A stretch of 64,000 nucleotides of DNA from NCBI GenBank assembly GCA_004764695.1, contig SMSO01000035.1:2480001-2544000 (forward strand), in the 5' to 3' direction. The position numbers and the translations under genes are program-made. Below are positions 1 through 12,959 of this stretch, in pieces. This DNA is from Schizochytrium sp. TIO01. Its lineage: Eukaryota; Protista; Bigyra: Labyrinthulomycetes. The notes beneath the pieces are model-generated. The model was not told the DNA's origin and did not search any database. It worked only from the letters and a program-made list of their open reading frames with translations. Position 1 is the stretch's first letter. Every line of letters begins with the position of its first letter.

Positions 1-1245
1 ATCATCATTCTAATTCCTCAGCAATGTACTATAGATGGGCTCTTCAAAATATAGCGCAAGCCACAAACATGCCTTTTGTTTACTTTTTCTACTTTCATTT
101 TTAAGTCTTATACTGAAGCATACATCAGACAAACTTATACACGAACTCGGGCGAATATGTGTGAAGATTGATATACAGGAACTCCTATAGGTGAATTTCG
201 TCTTTCTTTTTTATTTTGAAGATTATTAAACCCTTAAAAGAAGCTTTCAATAAAACCCTTCAACTTTATCATTACGTCATGTAGCAACAATCTCCTGCTT
301 GAATTGCACGACATTTTTCAAAACACAGTGCTTACCTCATCTACAGCAATGAACATCACAGAACCGCGAGAACGCATTTCTATCCTTGTACTTTCCAGTT
401 CTATTTATTCCTCCTTTCTTTCCCCAGTTCTTTATGGTGGGGTTTAGTAGAAATATTAATTTTAAAAAAATTTATAAAATACATCTCTGTTTTTAATCAT
501 GCTAATTCATTTTTTTTTTAATCATGATTTTCTTACATACTATTTTATTTTATTCTTTTAAAACGAACACAGAAACGACTTCTTTCAGCTTTACTTCGGT
601 TTGAAGGTGGATGACAAATATATTCTGACTTGCTTTAGCTGCCGTGAGCTTATTTATCTCTGCACTGTATATCGCTCTGGATTCTTCTTACCTAGAATAT
701 TTAATATTTGTTTTGTTTTTTTCCTAATTAAGTAAAACAACAATTACTTTCCCCGAACCAGAATAACTAGCCTTTACTGTAGTAAGAACATGTTTTTTCA
801 ATTTGCTTTTCTGTTGTTTTTCCTGTCTTTGTAGTTAGTTCCCCGCTGTGCTAAAGAACGTGGATCCTTACAGAACAGGGTTCTTTCGTAGCGCCCTCAA
901 GCCACCCCAGCGCCTGTGTGCAGCCGAGTCACTTGTCAGTCGTCCAAAATATTTAAAAGGGAGCTGACTACGATGTCGCAGCAGTTCCTCCTTTAGGCAA
1001 ATCATGGACACTCAGGTGTCGCATGACGCACTAACAGTGCGCCCAGATACGCTATAAATAAAACTAGCGGCCTTTATTCTACATCTTCTACATCTTCAAA
1101 TCGTGTGTGCTATTTCTCTCTTTCTTTTCATTAATGCTAGAGCTTTGCACCTTGAATCGCATATTAGTTTTGAAAACAAAATGATTATATATGTATTGAG
1201 CTCTCTTTTTTTCTCTTCTCCCCCTTTCTTTGTAAATTACAAATT

Positions 1246-5000: not shown

Positions 5001-7065
5001 CTAACGATGGCGACGTCGACGCAGAGCTCTGCTCGCGAGGTTCCGACTGTGTCCAAGTTGAAATCGCCACGTGCTTAACCTACTCGTACTCGTCTCTCAA
5101 ATTCTTTACAATGATGACTAAATGTAGCTACGCATTAATTCATTTCACAAAATGAAAGTGTCCGAGAACCAGCTCTATCTATAAACAACTAATCTCTATC
5201 TATCGCGGGCCACGGCCCACGAAGAGCCCGGCTCAACCCGTCCCCACGAGTCTGAAAAACCGTGTCTGAAAAGCTTGAAACTTCTCCTAGCTCTTCGTGC
5301 AGTATAGCCACGTGCAGGACTTGCTTATGAACTTGCTTATAGAGGCCTTCAGCCCTGTGGAACACGCGCGTGTGTCCCGTTTAGAGTAAGAGATCTTCTC
5401 GGGACACTTTTACACACAAACCCACTCGCTACTTTAGAACTCTGCTCTACTCGATAAATCAGTGCCCACCCACCACATCTAATGATTGATCGCTTCCATG
5501 GTCGAAACGAATGATGTCTATGACGCAAGTGAGAGCAAGCTAAAGAAAGCACCAGGATGATCACCAAATTATTTCTTCTGGGGCTCTCTTAATTACCAAC
5601 CGGGCCTAAAAATGCAGGCGGTAGCAATTCTCAAGTCTTATTCTTCTATTTTATTTATTTTTAGTAACATTTTTAATTTTTAGAAAGTATCTATTTATTA
5701 TTATTATTTGTTGATTTTATTAATATGGAGGGCCGATATAATAAATTATAAAATATATGTATAGAAACCATTTGGTACCTATGTATAATGAAGGAGAATA
5801 AAAAGTCGCCTTCCTCTGGGAAGATTCGTGTCCTAATCGTGTGACATTATGATTAAAAAGGAGCATAAATGCAACATAACAGAAGGGCAACTGCTTGTTT
5901 GAAGAGCAATATCAAGAAGCGATGTGACTGTGATCTGGTTGCCCATTTATTGGCAAATTTTAAAGGTATGATCGTTTTCCACTTTTCACAATTTTTCAAT
6001 TTTTCAATTTAAAAATAATAATAATAAATCAACACGTCTTCTCTGTTCGCGTTCGTATTATGTTGTCGTTGCCATGATAGTTGCTTTGCTTTATCTCAGT
6101 GTTCTCACAAGTAAGCTGCTGGTAAGCTACTATTATTCTGTTTGATCTTCGCGAAACCAAACATAGTTCCCGAGCTGCGGATTTAATGATTTCAAATGTA
6201 TGTATCCCATTTCTGCCGGGGTGTGCGAACGAATCATAGCACTTGTGTTAGTAGTAGTATCGCTTGCTTCCTTCTACTAAAGAACCTTTGTTCTGATGGT
6301 GGAATAAAGTAAAACACACATGCAATTTCAGTCAGGAGACGCCTATTCAACATTGCAACTCTTATTGGAAAGTCGCTAGCAACATCATGCTAAAGATTCC
6401 AATCGGTCACAGCTCTATTCTCATGAGGACAAGAACGTTCAAGACTTACTTTTCTGAAATGAGAACGAAAACTAACCTCTAAAATTCTACCATATTATTC
6501 TTCCTTTTTCGGGATCTGAAGCTGTGTATCCGCTAGTAAATGACGCATGGGGTGTGCGAGAGAAATCTGCAGTAACAGACTCGAAGATTGCAAATGTTAA
6601 CTGCGTTCTTTAGTAGCCGTTTTCAGAAGAACAAAAAATACTCACGCAATATTTGAGCAAATTTACAAATCCAACCATGGACAAATTGCTGAACTAGAGC
6701 TAATCGCGCAGTACAGAACCTAAGCTTTAAAGCATGCAAATTTGACTGCGCTGTTATAACCATGAAGTGGATATATGATTATCTACTAATAGCTTAAGTT
6801 GTCCCGTTGCCTACGTTTCAAAATTTTAAACTACCTTACGAGAACCTCCAAGATTTAGTATTAAATGTATCATTCTGGCAATACTAATTGTGTGCTGCTT
6901 GAAGCTCTCGTCCAAAACACTCTTCGCAATGATTGTAGCACCTAATTCTAAAGTTAAACGCATCAAGTATTCCCAGCAATTAACTTTCGCTCCTGGCCGA
7001 AAAATCAATTTGCAACTAGCCCCTGATAGGCAGGGCTCTGGCAAAAAAAAGATAAATAAGTTTAG

Positions 7066-7074
7066 CCCTGGCTA
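7066..7074 (+). repeat. Left terminal inverted repeat CCCTGGCTA
   Basis: Exact reverse complement of 11546-11554; preceded by TTAG. Confidence 0.9.
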
Positions 7075-7104
7075 TTTTTCGGGACGTATTACGTCCCGAA
7101 AAAT
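7074..7104. repeat. Left subterminal perfect palindrome ATTTTTCGGGACGTA-T-TACGTCCCGAAAAAT (partial second copy at 7140-7162)
   Basis: 15-bp arms around one central T. Related copy near the right end at 11287-11313. Confidence 0.9.
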
Positions 7105-7577
7105 CGGATAAACTTTAATTTTCCCGGTAGAGTATTTAAGGACTTATTACGTCCCGAAAAATATGTACCTACTTGAGTCATTGATCAATTCAACAGTCTA
7201 GCTCTGTTCGGGATGAAACTCGTTTAGTTTACCCTCCCCGACCTCACCTGTCCATATGTTATCATGTTCTCATGATTCTCCGATTGATAGTTGAGTTTAG
7301 GACCAAACAATGACATTCTCAGTGGCGGTTAGGTGGTGGTTAGGTTAACAGGTATTTGACACATGGTCGTTAGGTTCTCCCACGGTACCTGTTCTACCAG
7401 ACAATTAATACTGATAAACATCAATAATATCTTGCGCCAGCATGTAGTGCCAGCAGTACCAACAAAAGTACATCATACCTTACTTCATCGTCCACTTGCT
7501 AGTCTACTTGGGATCTATCAGCACTTCCCTCAGCGAAGAGGTCCATTGGCGCTTGAGTTTAACGTCAGCTGTGTGTC

Positions 7578-10500
7578 ATGTCTCTAGATGACGTCGAGAA
7601 TGACAAGGACTCAATCTACATTTCCTCTGATGAGTCTTCTTCTGATGAAGACGAGAACGATCTCTATGAGTGTTCATCGGCAAGTACTCCTGGCCATGAA
7701 AACTGGACCTTTCAATCTTACTCCACTGAAGGCGCAAAGTACCACAGCAACCTATCTGGGTCTCAACTTGGCATGAACGCAGTCCAACTCAAGTACAATT
7801 GCTCAAGCGAATTAATGCTCCCCAAGGTTCAACAAGAAAGTTCGGAGATTACTAAAAGGATTCGAAAGGTTCTTCGTGTTGACAATAACTACAAATTTAC
7901 CAGGCTTGATAGTTTCAAGATTTGTTTGCCGCCAGGCTGGGTGATTGCAGTTAAGGAATGGTTGAATAGTCTTAGCTCAAACGCATCTCCGCCATTTTCT
8001 ATCACGGATCAAGATTTCCGTGCCTACCTTCTCGTTGAAATTTCTCTGCGAGTTGCAGGAAAGTCGTTCTCGGAGTGTCTTGAGGACCCACCAGGTCATT
8101 GGAATCTAGCCCATACGGTATCCTATTCAAAAGTTCGAAAGGCAATGAGCCTGGACAAGTCCAATCGGGCAACAAAAGGGTCACGCGAGGCTAGAGTATG
8201 CTCCTCAAGTCCGATCATCCATGAAATGGGAGGTGCTGCTCAGCGCCATTGGGTGAAGATGTTCTTTGTCCCTAAAACCACTTGGATCGATCTTGATGAC
8301 GACAAGCTTCCCTATGGTTCTCCTCAGTGGGAGAATTTTGGAATTCGTACCATTCCAACGAAAACAAAAAAACAGAAACCCGTGATACATCTTGTGTGCT
8401 CTGTGGGTACAGGTCTGCTCCTAGTACCACGGTTAGAGACTTCCCACTCACCTGTTCATAAAATTGTAAGCAAGGCAATAGATTTTCTGAATGAGGGGGA
8501 GTCAGGAGAAAGCCCTGATGCGTCTGTGTCTTCAGAGCTTCGTGTATTCATTGATCGTGGTTATCTGGCATTATCGAAACCTCAGGATATGGATCGTGCA
8601 ACAAACATAACTCAAATTCTTCAGTCAAAGGGAGTCAAATTTCTTGGAACTTGTCGCAAGACCTCGTCATTCCCGTTTATAGATGTTGAAGGACCAGTTC
8701 CTGCTACGCCTGTGAGGGGAAGTCAAACTATCATTAACAGGAATGGCCGTCGAAGCACCTACACCGCTCAAAGATACCAGAATGGCGATTTTGTTGCTGC
8801 GATGATGATGCGTCACGGTGCGGGAAAGCATAGAGTTGCACAACTCATCACGAACGACCGTTGTTTGGCTGACCAAGTTTGGAGTTACGAAGTACTTCCT
8901 GCTGGAGTAGATTGGAACTCACCAGGTGGTGTAAAGCGCGTTCCACATGCTGAGATTGAGATAGAGCCGTGTGACATGAGTACATATAAGATGAAGGCAC
9001 AAGCTAATCATAAAATTAACCTTGTGAACGCCAATATCTTCTCAATGACAATTTCCCAAAGAACACCTGACTGGTTTATGGCTCGGCAATTTAGAATTAC
9101 AAGCACCGGTGCTTTTACCTGTATCAACTTTAAAAATGCTCCATTCGTTCATTCGGATGAGCTTATGGCCTTACACCACGATGTGAAATCGTTCGCTTGT
9201 CTTGACCCGCAACGAATTATCTCATTATTCCCCCGTCCTAATAAGCGTTCTTCTTATTCATCTGAAGGAGCTCAGAAGCAATATAAAAGGAAGCGTCAAG
9301 GGGAGGGTCTTATTCTTGAATATACATACTGGATGCAACGTATGAACAAAAATGAGCTTATCCAAAAGTTACTTTCTTTGGATGTAGGTGCAAAGACTGA
9401 TGGCAAAAAGATCGAACTAGCCAAGCGGATCGTAGACATCCTATCAAGAACTATAGATCATGAAACGGTCTCAAACGGAGAACTATCTTCCTTACAGGAA
9501 GACATACACCCTCAGCATGCATCTCAGGAGTCCACTACTCAAGACCTGCTGGAAATGAGTGACAGTAGTGACATTGGGGACAGCTTTCCCTTGCACAATT
9601 CTGAAACGATTGATGATAACCATACATGCACTTTCGAGGAACGCCAGAAATCATTTCTTAGAACAATCACACCAAGTTGGTTTATGAAGCCTATTCAAAA
9701 TGGGTTTTCGAATCATAAAAACCCACTGGCTTTGGGGATTGAAAATGAGGCAGACGTGGCGAAAGATCTTTCCAGATGGGTTAAGAAAGCAAGTTCCAAT
9801 AAATTCTGTATTCTCCAGCTACGCAAATATGGTCTGATTATTAATCGGGAAGTCCAATTTGTAGCAGACTCACCCGACGGTGCAGCTGTTCTTTTGAGGA
9901 ATACAGAGCTAGAAGGAAACAATTTTGTTATAGATGATGTATTTGCCTTAGAAATCAAAACAAGTACAAATGCCAAAACTATAGATGAGTTAAAGTCTCG
10001 AGTTGCTGGTCAGAGTGCGTGGCACGAATGCAAATGTGGAACAAGTGAGTTCGAGTCGTTAGTCCCAAATCCGTCGTTTCGAACTCAGTGTATCCATCAT
10101 GCAGCTACTTTAGATGTCCCTTACACCCTCCTTATATATGCCACAACTGAGGAAATCATGCAAGGAGTGCTAATCAAAGTCTCATGTGCCCAGCGCCAGT
10201 CATGGCGTGAGTATTTCAAAGCGTTGAGTGATGAATACATGGGCTTTGCTTATGGCAATCAACTTGGTAGGTTTCCTCGTTTTGCACCAGACCAATCACC
10301 AGACTGGGGTTATGCTGTGGATTTACACAGTGCCGAACTCGCTTTGCAGCTTTGGCGGAGGCATAGTGACGACGTGCTGGTCAACGGAACCCCACCGCCT
10401 TGCAAACGCCTACTGCCTTTGACTGTTAGTGTCTGGAATAAGATGATGGGCGGAGTTGATATCACTAGAAAAACTATCAATGGAGCGAGCATTCGTACTT

Positions 10501-11093
10501 CAAAGCTGACTCCTAATGCTTTGGTTTGTTTAACATTCATTGACTATATTTTATACAACTCGTTTCGAGCGTATCAGCTCCTCTCAATGGAGCATCGGAA
10601 CCTCACATCGAAGTGTAAAACAATTACGGAATGGTCAATGCTACGCAAAAATCTGTGCTGCTATAGAGGCTATCTAAGTAGTCTCGCAGAAGAAATTAGG
10701 GTTGTCTCAATGGAATCCCTTTACCCATTTGACAATACTTGTTCCATGTCTGACATAGAATTCTGCTGGAGAGCAACTGATAACACCATTTCGCCTACTT
10801 CTACAGCCTCGCTAGAATCGCCGCAACAGTATCAATACAGTAAGTCACGACTCCCAGAACTTCTACAAACTCGTTTAGTTGGACAGCATGAATGCGTGGG
10901 CAAGTTCAAGAAGAGGGGAGCCTGCATTATGTGTTGTGTTGATTGCGAACGGGGATCGGCGCCAGACCATCCATATCGTAATCCACGGAAGACCACTCGA
11001 TGGTGCCAAACTTGCAATGCTTACATTTGTAAGCATTGCAATATCAAATTTCATAGCGAGGAGCAAATTACGATTCCTCATTTCCATACATAA
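7578..11093 (+). CDS. piggyBac-like DDD transposase (1171 aa) with internal YqaJ/lambda-exonuclease-like domain, SAP-like motif and C-terminal Cys-rich domain
   Basis: Acidic N-terminus. WIDLDDDK (D240), VFIDRGY (D326) plus FLGTCR, and WNKMMGGVDI (D961) match the piggyBac DDD motifs. C-terminal CIMCC..RKTTRWCQTCNAYICKHCNIKFH is the Cys-rich domain. Nuclease motifs: QRTPDWFMARQFRITST, GIENE, GLIIN..VADSPDG, LEIKT, TQCIHH. Confidence 0.9.
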   Translation: MSLDDVENDKDSIYISSDESSSDEDENDLYECSSASTPGHENWTFQSYSTEGAKYHSNLSGSQLGMNAVQLKYNCSSELMLPKVQQESSEITKRIRKVLRVDNNYKFTRLDSFKICLPPGWVIAVKEWLNSLSSNASPPFSITDQDFRAYLLVEISLRVAGKSFSECLEDPPGHWNLAHTVSYSKVRKAMSLDKSNRATKGSREARVCSSSPIIHEMGGAAQRHWVKMFFVPKTTWIDLDDDKLPYGSPQWENFGIRTIPTKTKKQKPVIHLVCSVGTGLLLVPRLETSHSPVHKIVSKAIDFLNEGESGESPDASVSSELRVFIDRGYLALSKPQDMDRATNITQILQSKGVKFLGTCRKTSSFPFIDVEGPVPATPVRGSQTIINRNGRRSTYTAQRYQNGDFVAAMMMRHGAGKHRVAQLITNDRCLADQVWSYEVLPAGVDWNSPGGVKRVPHAEIEIEPCDMSTYKMKAQANHKINLVNANIFSMTISQRTPDWFMARQFRITSTGAFTCINFKNAPFVHSDELMALHHDVKSFACLDPQRIISLFPRPNKRSSYSSEGAQKQYKRKRQGEGLILEYTYWMQRMNKNELIQKLLSLDVGAKTDGKKIELAKRIVDILSRTIDHETVSNGELSSLQEDIHPQHASQESTTQDLLEMSDSSDIGDSFPLHNSETIDDNHTCTFEERQKSFLRTITPSWFMKPIQNGFSNHKNPLALGIENEADVAKDLSRWVKKASSNKFCILQLRKYGLIINREVQFVADSPDGAAVLLRNTELEGNNFVIDDVFALEIKTSTNAKTIDELKSRVAGQSAWHECKCGTSEFESLVPNPSFRTQCIHHAATLDVPYTLLIYATTEEIMQGVLIKVSCAQRQSWREYFKALSDEYMGFAYGNQLGRFPRFAPDQSPDWGYAVDLHSAELALQLWRRHSDDVLVNGTPPPCKRLLPLTVSVWNKMMGGVDITRKTINGASIRTSKLTPNALVCLTFIDYILYNSFRAYQLLSMEHRNLTSKCKTITEWSMLRKNLCCYRGYLSSLAEEIRVVSMESLYPFDNTCSMSDIEFCWRATDNTISPTSTASLESPQQYQYSKSRLPELLQTRLVGQHECVGKFKKRGACIMCCVDCERGSAPDHPYRNPRKTTRWCQTCNAYICKHCNIKFHSEEQITIPHFHT

Positions 11094-11286
11094 AAATTAT
11101 CCACACAAAAAATTAATATTACATTTAGCTTATATAAAATCTTCATTTATCGCGAAATCTTCATCTTTAGATGTTTCTCCGACTTGAGCAACGCAAAAAT
11201 AAACTACTATTGTTTATATTAACTAAACTATTAAACTAACCAAAATACCCAAACTCTTATACGTTTTCGCTAATGCAAAGTTCAGT

Positions 11287-11313
11287 TTTTCAGGACGTAT
11301 TACGTCCTGAAAA
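11287..11313. repeat. Right subterminal palindrome TTTTCAGGACGTA-T-TACGTCCTGAAAA
   Basis: Same motif as 7074-7104 with a compensatory G>A / C>T pair. Confidence 0.9.
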
Positions 11314-11545
11314 TCTAAAGGCCTATTTGCCCTATTAGGCCGTTTTATCGAGGTTGTGAGCCAATTTTTGGACGAGTAGCGTGAGCTCAATACGCTTGCT
11401 TCTGCAAAGAAATCGTGCTCAGTTTAGGGAAACAGTTGTTTCAACATGATCATACAATCAAATTTACGATTTTAGATCTTTACAGGGTTTTCTGGCGATT
11501 TTAGTCAAAAATATTTTGCGGACATAATTCGGGACATTTTGAATT

Positions 11546-11554
11546 TAGCCAGGG
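11546..11554 (-). repeat. Right terminal inverted repeat (TAGCCAGGG)
   Basis: Reverse complement of 7066-7074; followed by TTAG. Confidence 0.9.
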
Positions 11555-12959
11555 TTAGTAATTGGATTGAAAAGTATAGAATTAGTTGAAGTTTGTGGTT
11601 AAAAACTAAACTCTCCGAGAACTTATTCATATGCTCACATGTTGGCAAGTAAGGGCATGAAGTTATGTTTCGAGCTTACGTCAATTACATATACCTTCTT
11701 CGTAAGTTATATTGTTTCCTTATTTTTTATGCATGATATGCTTTTATAAATGCATAGCCATGAGGATGTTCAGAAGGATTGCAGGCCTCCTGTGATTTTA
11801 AGGAGGAATAGACTAGCATATTATGTTCGCTGATATGATGTAAATTCGTGCGCGCAAACTAGAACTCGTATGAATGAGGAGTAGTGCAGACCCCATGCAT
11901 GTAGCCAAGTCTAGAGTGCTCGTATAAACTATAAATTTCAAAATGACTGGGGAAATCAATTTGTCAATACTTTCCTAAGAGACAGTCAAAGAAACTAAAC
12001 ATTTTAGGTTAATGAATTAACAAATTCCGAACCTTAGACATAACTCGCGGAGGTTGCAATTGAGTTACGAATATCTCAAAGTCCAGGCTCTCACGCTCAT
12101 CCTCGATCATCAGCTCTGGTTTCATCTAACTTGAAAGTGCGAAATTTAAACAATTGAATAATTTAATTGCCTGATGTCTGAAATCCATCAACCCCTTAAA
12201 TGTGTCCTATTGCTCCAGGCCTTCCTTAAAATCTCCAAAACTATTCACTGCATTTCGCTTACCTGATCCTCGGGTTGTCAATTTTACCAATAGTATTGAA
12301 CATTCATTTCCATCAGTGTCATGCTGATTTAGACTGTTGAGTAATGAGTACTGCCAATTATTATGCGCCTTCGATTCCTATTACGCATTAAAGAGAATAT
12401 CTTTCCATACTCACGTGAAGGTTTTCATCAATTATGTATAGAAACTGCAAGATAGAAAATTATGCGATTATGTGATCATCTGGGAGTCCTATCTAGGATT
12501 GACCCATATCAAATTTATTTGTACTCGATGTTGACGCGTCCAGATCATCTACGTACATTAATAGAAGATTGAACAAGCCTAAATAAGATTTTAATGAGTT
12601 TCCCCCTTTTAATCTACATAGCAGAAATGTAACTGTCGACTATATAGAATCGTTTGTTGGTTCATTTCAACAGCAAAGGTAAGTCTTATAACCGAAATAT
12701 AGAAGTACATCTGACTTTAAAGTTGAAATAATATATAGAGTTACATCAATCTCAACAAATTTTCTGATATTGATCTCACTTCCGTGTCAAATTTATGTTG
12801 AGGTCAACTATAGATAAATTACATCTGGCAAGATAATGGAGATACCCCAGAAGCCTTCTGAAGGCTTTTTACTGCTCTTTTTTAATTGAATTGGTGTGTT
12901 GGCAAGCTGCCTTGGTGTTCTAATACCCCTCCCCATTTGGTTTTATTTTTGTAACTCAG

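Follow-up and report, generated by a model that had tools for sequence, protein, structure and literature searches.

Lambda-exonuclease-type enzymes have been described in cut-and-paste DNA transposons. Within Kolobok, the KolobokE lineage carries a lambda-exonuclease-like nuclease and KolobokH carries a RecQ helicase (Kojima & Bao 2022, PMC9587614), and ISL2EU, a cut-and-paste DDE transposon, is equipped with a YqaJ-type exonuclease (PMC4122938). The piggyBac transposase is among the best-understood eukaryotic transposases and is heavily used in genome engineering; our search of the literature, which did not extend to Repbase or Dfam, found no description of a nuclease within a piggyBac transposase. 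Here, we analyzed a stretch of 64,000 nucleotides (nt) from the labyrinthulomycete Schizochytrium sp. TIO01 (contig SMSO01000035.1, positions 2,480,001 to 2,544,000 of the forward strand; hereafter the window, in whose coordinates the features of the element are given). Positions 7066-11554 of the window are occupied by a 4489-bp transposon of the piggyBac superfamily, which is exactly delimited at both ends. We consider it likely that its protein is a piggyBac transposase with the usual catalytic triad of three Asp residues (DDD), in which a 5'-end-resecting nuclease of the lambda-exonuclease/YqaJ type is nested and coupled to transposition.

Boundaries, copies and empty sites of the element

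The element begins with the terminal inverted repeat (TIR) CCCTGGCTA (7066..7074, + strand), a piggyBac-type CCC... terminus that is identical in 7/7 copies, and ends with TAGCCAGGG (11546..11554, + strand), as revealed by inverted-repeat comparison of the ends. Such CCC...GGG termini with short TIRs are those required of the piggyBac superfamily. The target-site duplication (TSD) TTAG lies on the left at 7062..7065 and on the right at 11555..11558, and was recognized by repeat comparison as well as by the empty-site joint in sequencing runs X2 and X16 (see below). A first-pass annotation of the window had described an intact element at 7066-11554 with perfect TIRs and a perfect TSD. Both the ends and the TTAG on either side proved to be exact, with an empty-site joint from 7061 to 11555, and the TIRs are indeed perfect over 9 bp; this is, however, their entire length, since no continuous inverted repeat is found further in and the ends share sub-terminal palindromes instead. 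Repeat search of the ends showed that these palindromes follow the motif TTCGGGACGTA-T-TACGTCCCGAA, with two copies near the left end, one copy about 235 bp from the right end, and a right half-site. A perfect copy, ATTTTTCGGGACGTA-T-TACGTCCCGAAAAAT, is located at 7074..7104 and a second, imperfect copy at 7133..7163; the right-hand copy, TTCAGGACGTA-T-TACGTCCTGAA, is located at 11281..11319, and the half-site TTCGGGACATTTT (11528..11540, + strand) lies just inside the right terminus. The sub-terminal palindromes are probable transposase binding sites.

In the 64-Mb assembly, seven copies of the element are present at separate loci. They are 100% identical over all 4489 bp, including the open reading frame (ORF), and every one of them has a perfect 4-bp duplication of its own (TTAG, ATAG, TTAT, CTAA, TTAA, TTAT, and ATAT). 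Fragments of the element are also present in this assembly. Shorter derivatives, that is, miniature inverted-repeat transposable elements, were not found, as the left end at ≤3 mismatches matches only the seven full copies in the genome. The element was also detected in public sequencing runs of 11 independent studies, and contigs of four runs were aligned to the element together with 500 bp of flank on each side. In the DNA runs X2 and X16, which represent two other isolates, a contig passes from position 7061 straight to 11555; 4493 bases are left out and 4 letters are shared at the joint. This corresponds to an exact empty site with a single TTAG. With this joint seen in both runs, isolates differ in whether they carry the insertion of the window, and its boundaries are established exactly. 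Both runs contain the element at other places as well: in X2, the sequencing depth is about 169 over the element and 16 over its flanks, and in X16, the copies show 95-99% identity and 1-nt indels. The recent activity suggested by the first-pass annotation is thus borne out by seven identical copies with their own duplications and by empty sites in two other isolates, and the DNA transposon at 7066-11554, a member of the piggyBac superfamily, is shown to be autonomous and to have moved very recently.

An older copy of the element with 98% identity was found on the same contig as the window (L008/L020, G000:C34:603142-607581). The first 33 bases are missing from it, and the reading frame is interrupted near residue 1042. 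In addition, a contig of run X17 (RNA by guess) follows the element over 7478-11079 and departs from the window 14 nt before the stop codon, where 31 letters of different sequence follow and the break shows no GT; this may reflect either a chimeric contig or a variant 3' end.

Architecture of the transposase and its nested nuclease domain

The transposase is encoded by a single intact, intron-free ORF of 1171 amino acids (aa) at 7578..11093 on the + strand, and no further ORF of ≥120 aa was called within several kb of it. As had been noted in the first-pass annotation, this ORF contains the DDD residues, a set of nuclease motifs and a Cys-rich tail, each of which is found at the residue originally assigned to it: D240 in WIDLDDDKL, D326 in FIDRGY, and D961 in GGVDITRK for the transposase; W499 and R503 in QRTPDWFMARQFRITST, G720 and E724 in GIENE, D767 in ADSPDG, E792 and K794 in LEIKT, and Q837 and H840 in TQCIHH for the nuclease; and a tail running from C1116 to H1159. 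From the second to the third Asp (D326-D961) the distance is 635 aa, in line with the about 635 aa pointed out there.

Because Pfam is silent on the transposase itself, the domain calls rest on family profiles and predicted structure. A word-indexed protein search with the transposase matched only itself, the same search with an alignment of 33 sequences returned 7 proteins, and a PHROGs search of the transposase returned nothing. Run exhaustively against 1.8 billion cluster representatives (E ≤ 1e-3), phmmer identified 491 relatives, many of which are 1000-1400 aa long and match end to end. The alignment of 33 full-length relatives (named A2, 16-40% identity) was converted to a profile and run against all PDB sequences. 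It matched piggyBac 6x67 (E 2.6e-6) and piggyBat 9c0f (E 8.3e-6) with the three Asp positions (D1, D2, and D3) and the Cys-rich domain in register, mimivirus R354 (E 3e-4) over the 'SPDG...EiK' stretch, LHK-exonuclease (3syy, E 6.5e-4) over the N-terminal W/R motif, and THO1 SAP (E 0.003). The 'slDDDk' and 'iDRgY' of the family align with 'SLDEG' and 'YMDNYY' of piggyBat, and 'WNklkGgvD' aligns with 'YNQTKGGVD' of piggyBac; these motifs carry the three catalytic Asp. About 480 positions of the A2 profile fall where piggyBat has about 46 residues. When the 33 relatives were scanned individually with Pfam, SAP was found in 11/33 (best E 2.2e-10), DDE_Tnp_1_7 in 3/33 (best in relative P0037, with 40.7 bits against a cut-off of 22.4), and YqaJ in 1/33, at E 0.006 only. 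The SAP matches of these relatives map onto transposase residues 588-621. Weak zf-Tnp_2/B-box matches to the Cys-rich tail were also observed, as was a weak zf-Tnp_2 match in L033, a paralog in the same genome.

An AlphaFold2 model of the full protein, based on a 122-sequence alignment, is confident, with a mean predicted local distance difference test score (pLDDT) of 85.6 and a predicted template modeling score (pTM) of 0.82. Disorder in the model is limited to the N-terminus, the linkers 557-576 and 629-677 around the SAP-like helices, and residues 1062-1087. Foldseek against the PDB ranked piggyBac first (E 6e-6), then Tn5 and piggyBat, and then lambda exonuclease (E 1e-3, probability 1.00). 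When these matches were re-aligned with VIA-align, model residues 85..1046 were superposed on piggyBac 6x67_C with Z 23.9 (root mean square deviation 3.6 Å over 376 residues) and residues 85..1044 on piggyBat 9c0f_C with Z 21.6 (4.0 Å, 362 residues), and retroviral integrase catalytic cores superposed over 232..995. Because one rigid superposition spans both sides of the insert, the model has the piggyBac fold closed around it, which agrees with the split RNase H fold that the first-pass annotation had envisaged. The insert was superposed on lambda exonuclease 3sm4_B (Z 12.5; 3.7 Å, 202/228 residues; model 489..928), LHK-exonuclease 3sz4 (Z 11.5; 3.5 Å, 180/195 residues; model 496..901), and mimivirus R354 5yeu_A (Z 11.2; 4.9 Å, 220/381 residues; model 467..908), and MGME1, Cas4, and Dna2 had Z 7-8. 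Moreover, the language-model neighbours of residues 686-930 were YqaJ clusters in 28/30 named cases, mostly from giant viruses and phages. The YqaJ/PD-(D/E)XK domain that had been proposed for aa ~490-880 is thus recovered by the family profile, the structure and the language-model neighbours (489-928), but not by Pfam on the protein itself.

In the predicted structure, the chain is shown to run from the RNase H core through a beta-rich segment into a complete nuclease (~aa 486-930) with a SAP-like excursion, and from there into the helix with the third catalytic Asp. The N-terminal helical dimerisation/DNA-binding part of the piggyBac fold (aa 85-235; 7830..8282, + strand, as for all domains below) was assigned by the superpositions on 6x67_C and 9c0f_C, which start at residue 85, and by the profile, which aligns piggyBac 27-233. 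The first part of the RNase H-like core (aa 236-366; 8283..8675), with D240 (8295-8297) and D326 (8553-8555), is supported by conservation and the piggyBat alignment. It is followed by a beta-rich segment (aa 367-440; 8676..8897) that, judging from the secondary structure of the model and the superposition, presumably stands at the place of the piggyBac insertion domain. The N-terminal helices of the lambda-exonuclease-type domain (aa 486-545; 9033..9212), which include W499 and R503, were located by the profile match to 3syy at 497-552 and by the superposition from residue 489. Inside the nuclease, the relatives' SAP matches, the profile and the model all point to a SAP-like helix-turn-helix excursion (aa 588-628; 9339..9461), with model helices 591-601 and 611-630 and disordered linkers on either side. 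The PD-(D/E)XK core (aa 686-930; 9633..10367) contains D767 (9876-9878), E792 (9951-9953), K794 (9957-9959), and Q837; it is supported by conservation, structure and YqaJ neighbours, and its catalytic residues lie on model strands 768-775 and 783-796. The last part of the RNase H-like core (aa 936-1046; 10383..10715), with W953-N954, D961 (10458-10460) and the C-terminal half of the DNA-binding domain, was assigned by the profile and superposition. Finally, a C-terminal Cys-rich zinc-finger domain of the piggyBac type (aa 1106-1165; 10893..11072) was identified by its conserved Cys residues and by alignment to the C-terminal domain of piggyBat.

The transposase therefore has an RNase H-like core with the DDD residues in piggyBac-type motifs and, on sequence grounds, a C-terminal Cys-rich domain of the cross-brace zinc finger kind. 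Measured against the structural definition of piggyBac, the element departs only in lacking strict TTAA specificity and a direct Pfam match. The insert has the lambda-exonuclease fold according to VIA-align, Foldseek and its YqaJ neighbours, and it carries both the catalytic D...(D/E)xK on the core sheet with the accompanying Q and an N-terminal W...R...TaS motif. It conforms to the fold and motif definition of lambda-exonuclease/YqaJ nucleases, not to the Pfam threshold.

Both sets of catalytic residues are highly conserved among the 33 relatives. The DDD residues are retained in nearly all of them (D240 in 32/33, D326 in 31/33, and D961 in 32/33), with R327, W953, and N954 near-invariant. 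The same holds for the nuclease (W499 in 32/33, R503 in 31/33, D767 in 33/33, E792 in 31/33, K794 in 31/33, and Q837 in 33/33), in which G720, E724, S765, R835, and H840 are also near-invariant. In the zinc finger, C1116, C1119, C1143, C1146, C1151, and C1154 are invariant and H1159 is present in 32/33. DDD and D-ExK-Q-H are both retained in 28/33 relatives. Conservation of the nuclease parts equals that of the RNase H parts, with a mean pairwise identity of 25-28% (25% in the nuclease core) versus 23%. Both catalytic sets are under joint purifying selection. Named relatives come from Skeletonema dohrnii, S. menzelii, and Thalassiosira exigua (diatoms), Hondaea fermentalgiana (labyrinthulomycete), and Plasmodiophora brassicae, the last of which is annotated as 'SAP domain-containing protein', and for the whole protein the closest language-model cluster bears the label Oomycota. 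A metagenome scan detected 5 loci, of which the sole near-complete one (L046, with a 1241-aa ORF) is without a full left flank, its ends being not definable; the viral contig collection contained no relatives.

Since 33/33 full-length relatives have the insert, it is a family-wide feature and not a one-off nested insertion, a possibility that the first-pass annotation had itself raised. This also bears on the suspicion that the architecture is an artefact, whether through such an insertion, mis-assembly or a chimeric ORF, or because the element does not belong to piggyBac at all. The missing Pfam match on the protein itself could be taken in that sense, yet the seven identical copies have distinct flanks, the element appears in runs of 11 independent studies, the full-length architecture recurs in all aligned relatives from several protist lineages, and no other structure matches nearly as well as piggyBac (Z 23.9 versus 12.4 for Tn5 with VIA-align). 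An artefact is thus extremely improbable.

Possible roles of the nested nuclease

In the reading that we prefer, that of a DDD transposase with a coupled 5'-end-resecting nuclease, the DDD site would perform the usual piggyBac chemistry (3'-end nick, hairpin, hairpin opening, and strand transfer), at NTAN rather than strictly at TTAA. The nested nuclease, held beside the DDD site, would degrade in the 5'->3' direction the 5'-phosphorylated ends made by the latter. At the donor break, the complementary 4-nt overhangs, which would otherwise be religated precisely, would be resected; resection would lead to homologous recombination from a sister or homologous copy still carrying the element, and a cut-and-paste event would thereby result in a net gain of copies. 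That donor-break resection, recombinational repair and copy gain are the actual consequence of the nuclease is put forward only tentatively. We favor donor resection because the nearest folds are recombination/end-resection enzymes, because the candidate 5'-phosphate-binding R503 is conserved, and because ISL2EU and KolobokE independently gained similar nucleases and KolobokH a RecQ helicase, each of them a function of the resection type. With regard to the first of these points, the closest structural relatives of the nuclease (lambda exonuclease, LHK-exonuclease, MGME1, Dna2, and Cas4) are all 5'-end processing enzymes. With regard to the second, the Arg of the N-terminal motif of lambda exonuclease (R28) contacts the 5' phosphate, and we assume by likeness to this enzyme that R503 is a candidate for the same function.

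A fold of this class might also serve for cutting. PD-(D/E)XK nucleases can be endonucleases, and R354, Cas4, and SOX, relatives among the fold matches, show endonuclease activity. Located within the catalytic core, from where the same DNA end is reachable, the nested domain might act as the second-strand (5'-end) cutter, like TnsA beside TnsB in Tn7, and replace the hairpin route of piggyBac. However, its closest folds are exonucleases and 5'-end processors and not TnsA or restriction-type endonucleases, which makes a TnsA-like cutter less likely. Moreover, the N-terminal W/R motif of 5'-phosphate-dependent lambda-exonuclease relatives is conserved, and the 4-bp duplication and CCC/GGG termini fit the ordinary piggyBac pathway. 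We judge second-strand cutting to be improbable.

A further possibility arises from the target sites. Besides the seven insertions of the window element, two insertions were analyzed for the paralog family L021 of the same genome, which has 40% protein identity, ends CCCTGGATA / TATCCAGGG, its own sub-terminal palindromes, and the duplications CTAA and CTAG. The nine TSDs are TTAG, ATAG, TTAT (twice), CTAA (twice), TTAA, ATAT, and CTAG. Their length is 4 bp and their sequence NTAN in 9/9, every duplication is perfect, and TTAA is found in only 1/9. Hence, the 4-bp length and the central TA fit piggyBac, whereas strict TTAA specificity does not. The relaxed target accords with one of the functions that the first-pass annotation had put forward for the nuclease (end resection, copy gain, or processing of non-TTAA ends). 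Canonical piggyBac needs no DNA synthesis (Mitra et al. 2008, as cited in PMC4122938). Its TTAA overhang pairs with the TTAA target. At NTAN targets, pairing is certain for the central TA only, and within the same architecture the nuclease could trim the carried-over 4-nt 5' overhang and so allow integration there; gap filling from the target strand would then give a perfect duplication, which would explain the perfect non-TTAA duplications in two element families. The nuclease is also inserted beside the equivalent of the piggyBac insertion domain and, as far as this position can be judged from the model, near the expected 4-nt flank. On the other hand, the mismatched 5' flaps left by most other transposons and retroviruses are removed by host enzymes, so that a dedicated nuclease would be unneeded, and relatives of lambda exonuclease are typically processive and not limited to 4 nt. 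The insert-free canonical piggyBac of this genome is present as a single copy, so it offers no TSD spectrum for comparison. On balance, overhang trimming seems somewhat unlikely to be the role of the nuclease, although it is the main rival of donor resection.

The same genome contains divergent paralog families with the same layout. The single-copy paralog L023:1399-5130 (G000:C6:1872410-1876033), with 33% identity, has an intact ORF of about 1244 aa in which DDD is replaced by H, D, and G and D-E-K by D, K, and N; this descendant may have been domesticated or recently disabled. The paralogs L033:2101-6015 and L034:2390-6085 (both in G000:C30) are more distant and have intact ORFs of 1232-1305 aa. 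L033 has retained DDD and has His in place of both E and K of the nuclease (D-H-H), and in L034, most catalytic residues are gone from both domains. Open-frame paralogs without nuclease residues, such as L033 and L023, raise the question of whether the nuclease fold is kept for another reason, either as a structural/oligomerisation module or for an activity against host or competitor DNA. This would be compatible with the nuclease activity being so far a predicted one, and relatives of lambda exonuclease often oligomerise. Nevertheless, a purely structural role would not need the catalytic D, E, K, and Q that are found in 31-33/33 divergent relatives, and single-copy L023 has lost DDD as well as its nuclease residues; because it is without both catalytic sets, the two activities seem to be lost together, as would fit their acting in concert. 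Such an alternative function of the fold is, in our view, quite improbable. Separately, a repeat of about 134 bp was observed beside the L023 gene (L023:6279-6412), with dozens of genomic copies at 80-93% identity that are partly in tandem (C24:795358-795838).

Ordinary piggyBac ORFs are present in this genome as well. In these, DDE_Tnp_1_7 is matched at full length within about 400 residues, so that they are without the insert; they include L035:28-2826 (G000:C31:7605128-7607926; 932 aa), a single-copy gene that may be domesticated, and L036:778-3309 (G000:C13; 843 aa). Another ORF, L039:3138-6317 (G000:C13:6426637-6429816; 1059 aa), was tried as a family member and discarded as unrelated, only the first 95 positions of DDE_Tnp_1_7 being matched. 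A stand-alone YqaJ ORF was also found (L038:1285-2508 on the - strand, G000:C36; 406 aa). It scores 81.6 bits with Pfam YqaJ, which indicates that the Pfam model works on this genome. Silicon transporters and light-harvesting proteins gave no matches in the genome, which speaks against a diatom or any other phototroph as host.

Several points weigh against our preferred reading of a piggyBac transposase with a coupled, nested nuclease. Pfam detected none of DDE_Tnp_1_7, YqaJ, and SAP in the transposase, either whole or in three pieces, at E up to 10. Two of the profiles by which the first-pass annotation had proposed to recognize the protein, DDE_Tnp_1_7 (PF13843) and SAP (PF02037), thus match some relatives but not the transposase itself, and the curated threshold of YqaJ (PF09588) was not reached. 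Comparison of the family profile with single ORFs of the same genome by hhalign gave probabilities of 13% for the canonical piggyBac L035 and 1.6% for the YqaJ gene L038; the motifs are in register (SPDG...EIK) despite these low values, which are too weak for use. The bringing together of D240, D326, and D961 across the insert is predicted from superposition of the model, and nuclease activity, polarity and substrate in this family are predicted from fold and motifs. Copy gain could also be achieved through host resection, with no built-in nuclease. The clean empty sites fit target sites that were never occupied and precisely excised ones equally, and cannot separate the two. As for expression, contigs covering 7066-11112 and 7478-11079 come from two runs that are RNA only by guess and could be DNA.

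In the most far-reaching reading, this would be a natural two-active-site transposase in which the nuclease is mechanistically coupled to the DDD site and would either force recombinational repair of the donor, making transposition net-replicative, or trim the overhang, freeing the element from TTAA. This arrangement would be ancient and widespread in SAR (stramenopile, alveolate, and rhizarian) protists, with occasional joint loss of the two activities in single-copy, possibly domesticated descendants. As a whole, we regard this composite picture as plausible, if still short of probable.

Significance and comparison with known systems

That a whole second nuclease has been accommodated at the known insertion point of the RNase H fold illustrates the extent to which a transposase can be remodelled. 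As an apparently active, intron-free element with a single ORF, the transposon described here makes it possible to ask whether transposons steer donor repair or target choice by a nuclease of their own, and a piggyBac that accepts NTAN may be of interest for tool builders. The family comprises at least 491 clusters at 50% identity, the members of which are labelled as hypothetical, 'SAP domain-containing' or 'B-box zinc finger' proteins. Because they carry such labels only, an entire transposon lineage is overlooked in protist genome annotations.

Compared with canonical piggyBac (Trichoplusia ni, 6x67; piggyBat, 9c0f), the element shares the overall fold, the DDD residues in LDxx, xDRxY/xDNxF, and NxxKGGVD motifs, the Cys-rich C-terminal zinc finger, the 5'-CCC...GGG-3' termini, the 4-bp duplication with central TA, and the single ORF. 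It differs in the distance from the second to the third Asp, which is about 635 residues versus about 100 owing to the complete lambda-exonuclease-type nuclease, SAP motif included, that lies in between, as well as in its NTAN target versus strict TTAA and in a sequence too diverged for Pfam. With lambda exonuclease, YqaJ, LHK-exonuclease, and R354 (1avq, 3sm4, 3syy, and 5yeu), the insert shares the fold (Z 11-12.5), the D...ExK...Q residues and the N-terminal W...R. Unlike these enzymes, it is an internal domain of a transposase and is itself interrupted by the SAP-like excursion and two disordered linkers. The likeness to TnsA and TnsB of Tn7 is conceptual, in that a PD-(D/E)XK nuclease works with a DDE transposase at transposon ends; these are two separate bacterial proteins, however, and TnsA is a restriction-enzyme-like endonuclease, with homology limited to the broad fold class.

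The closest parallels are found in other superfamilies. KolobokE likewise combines a DDD/E cut-and-paste transposase with a lambda-exonuclease-like nuclease of the PD-(D/E)XK type and generates 4-bp duplications of the TTAA type, but it belongs to another superfamily and its termini are RR/YY, versus CCC/GGG here (PMC9587614). ISL2EU, like the element in the window, is a DDE element of the cut-and-paste kind with a YqaJ-type exonuclease, whereas its nuclease is encoded by a separate ORF, its superfamily is a different one, and its transposase has a THAP domain (PMC4122938). The present element thus represents, after ISL2EU and KolobokE, the third independent case in which cut-and-paste elements have recruited a lambda-exonuclease-type enzyme, and three independent recruitments suggest a general selective advantage of controlling end processing.

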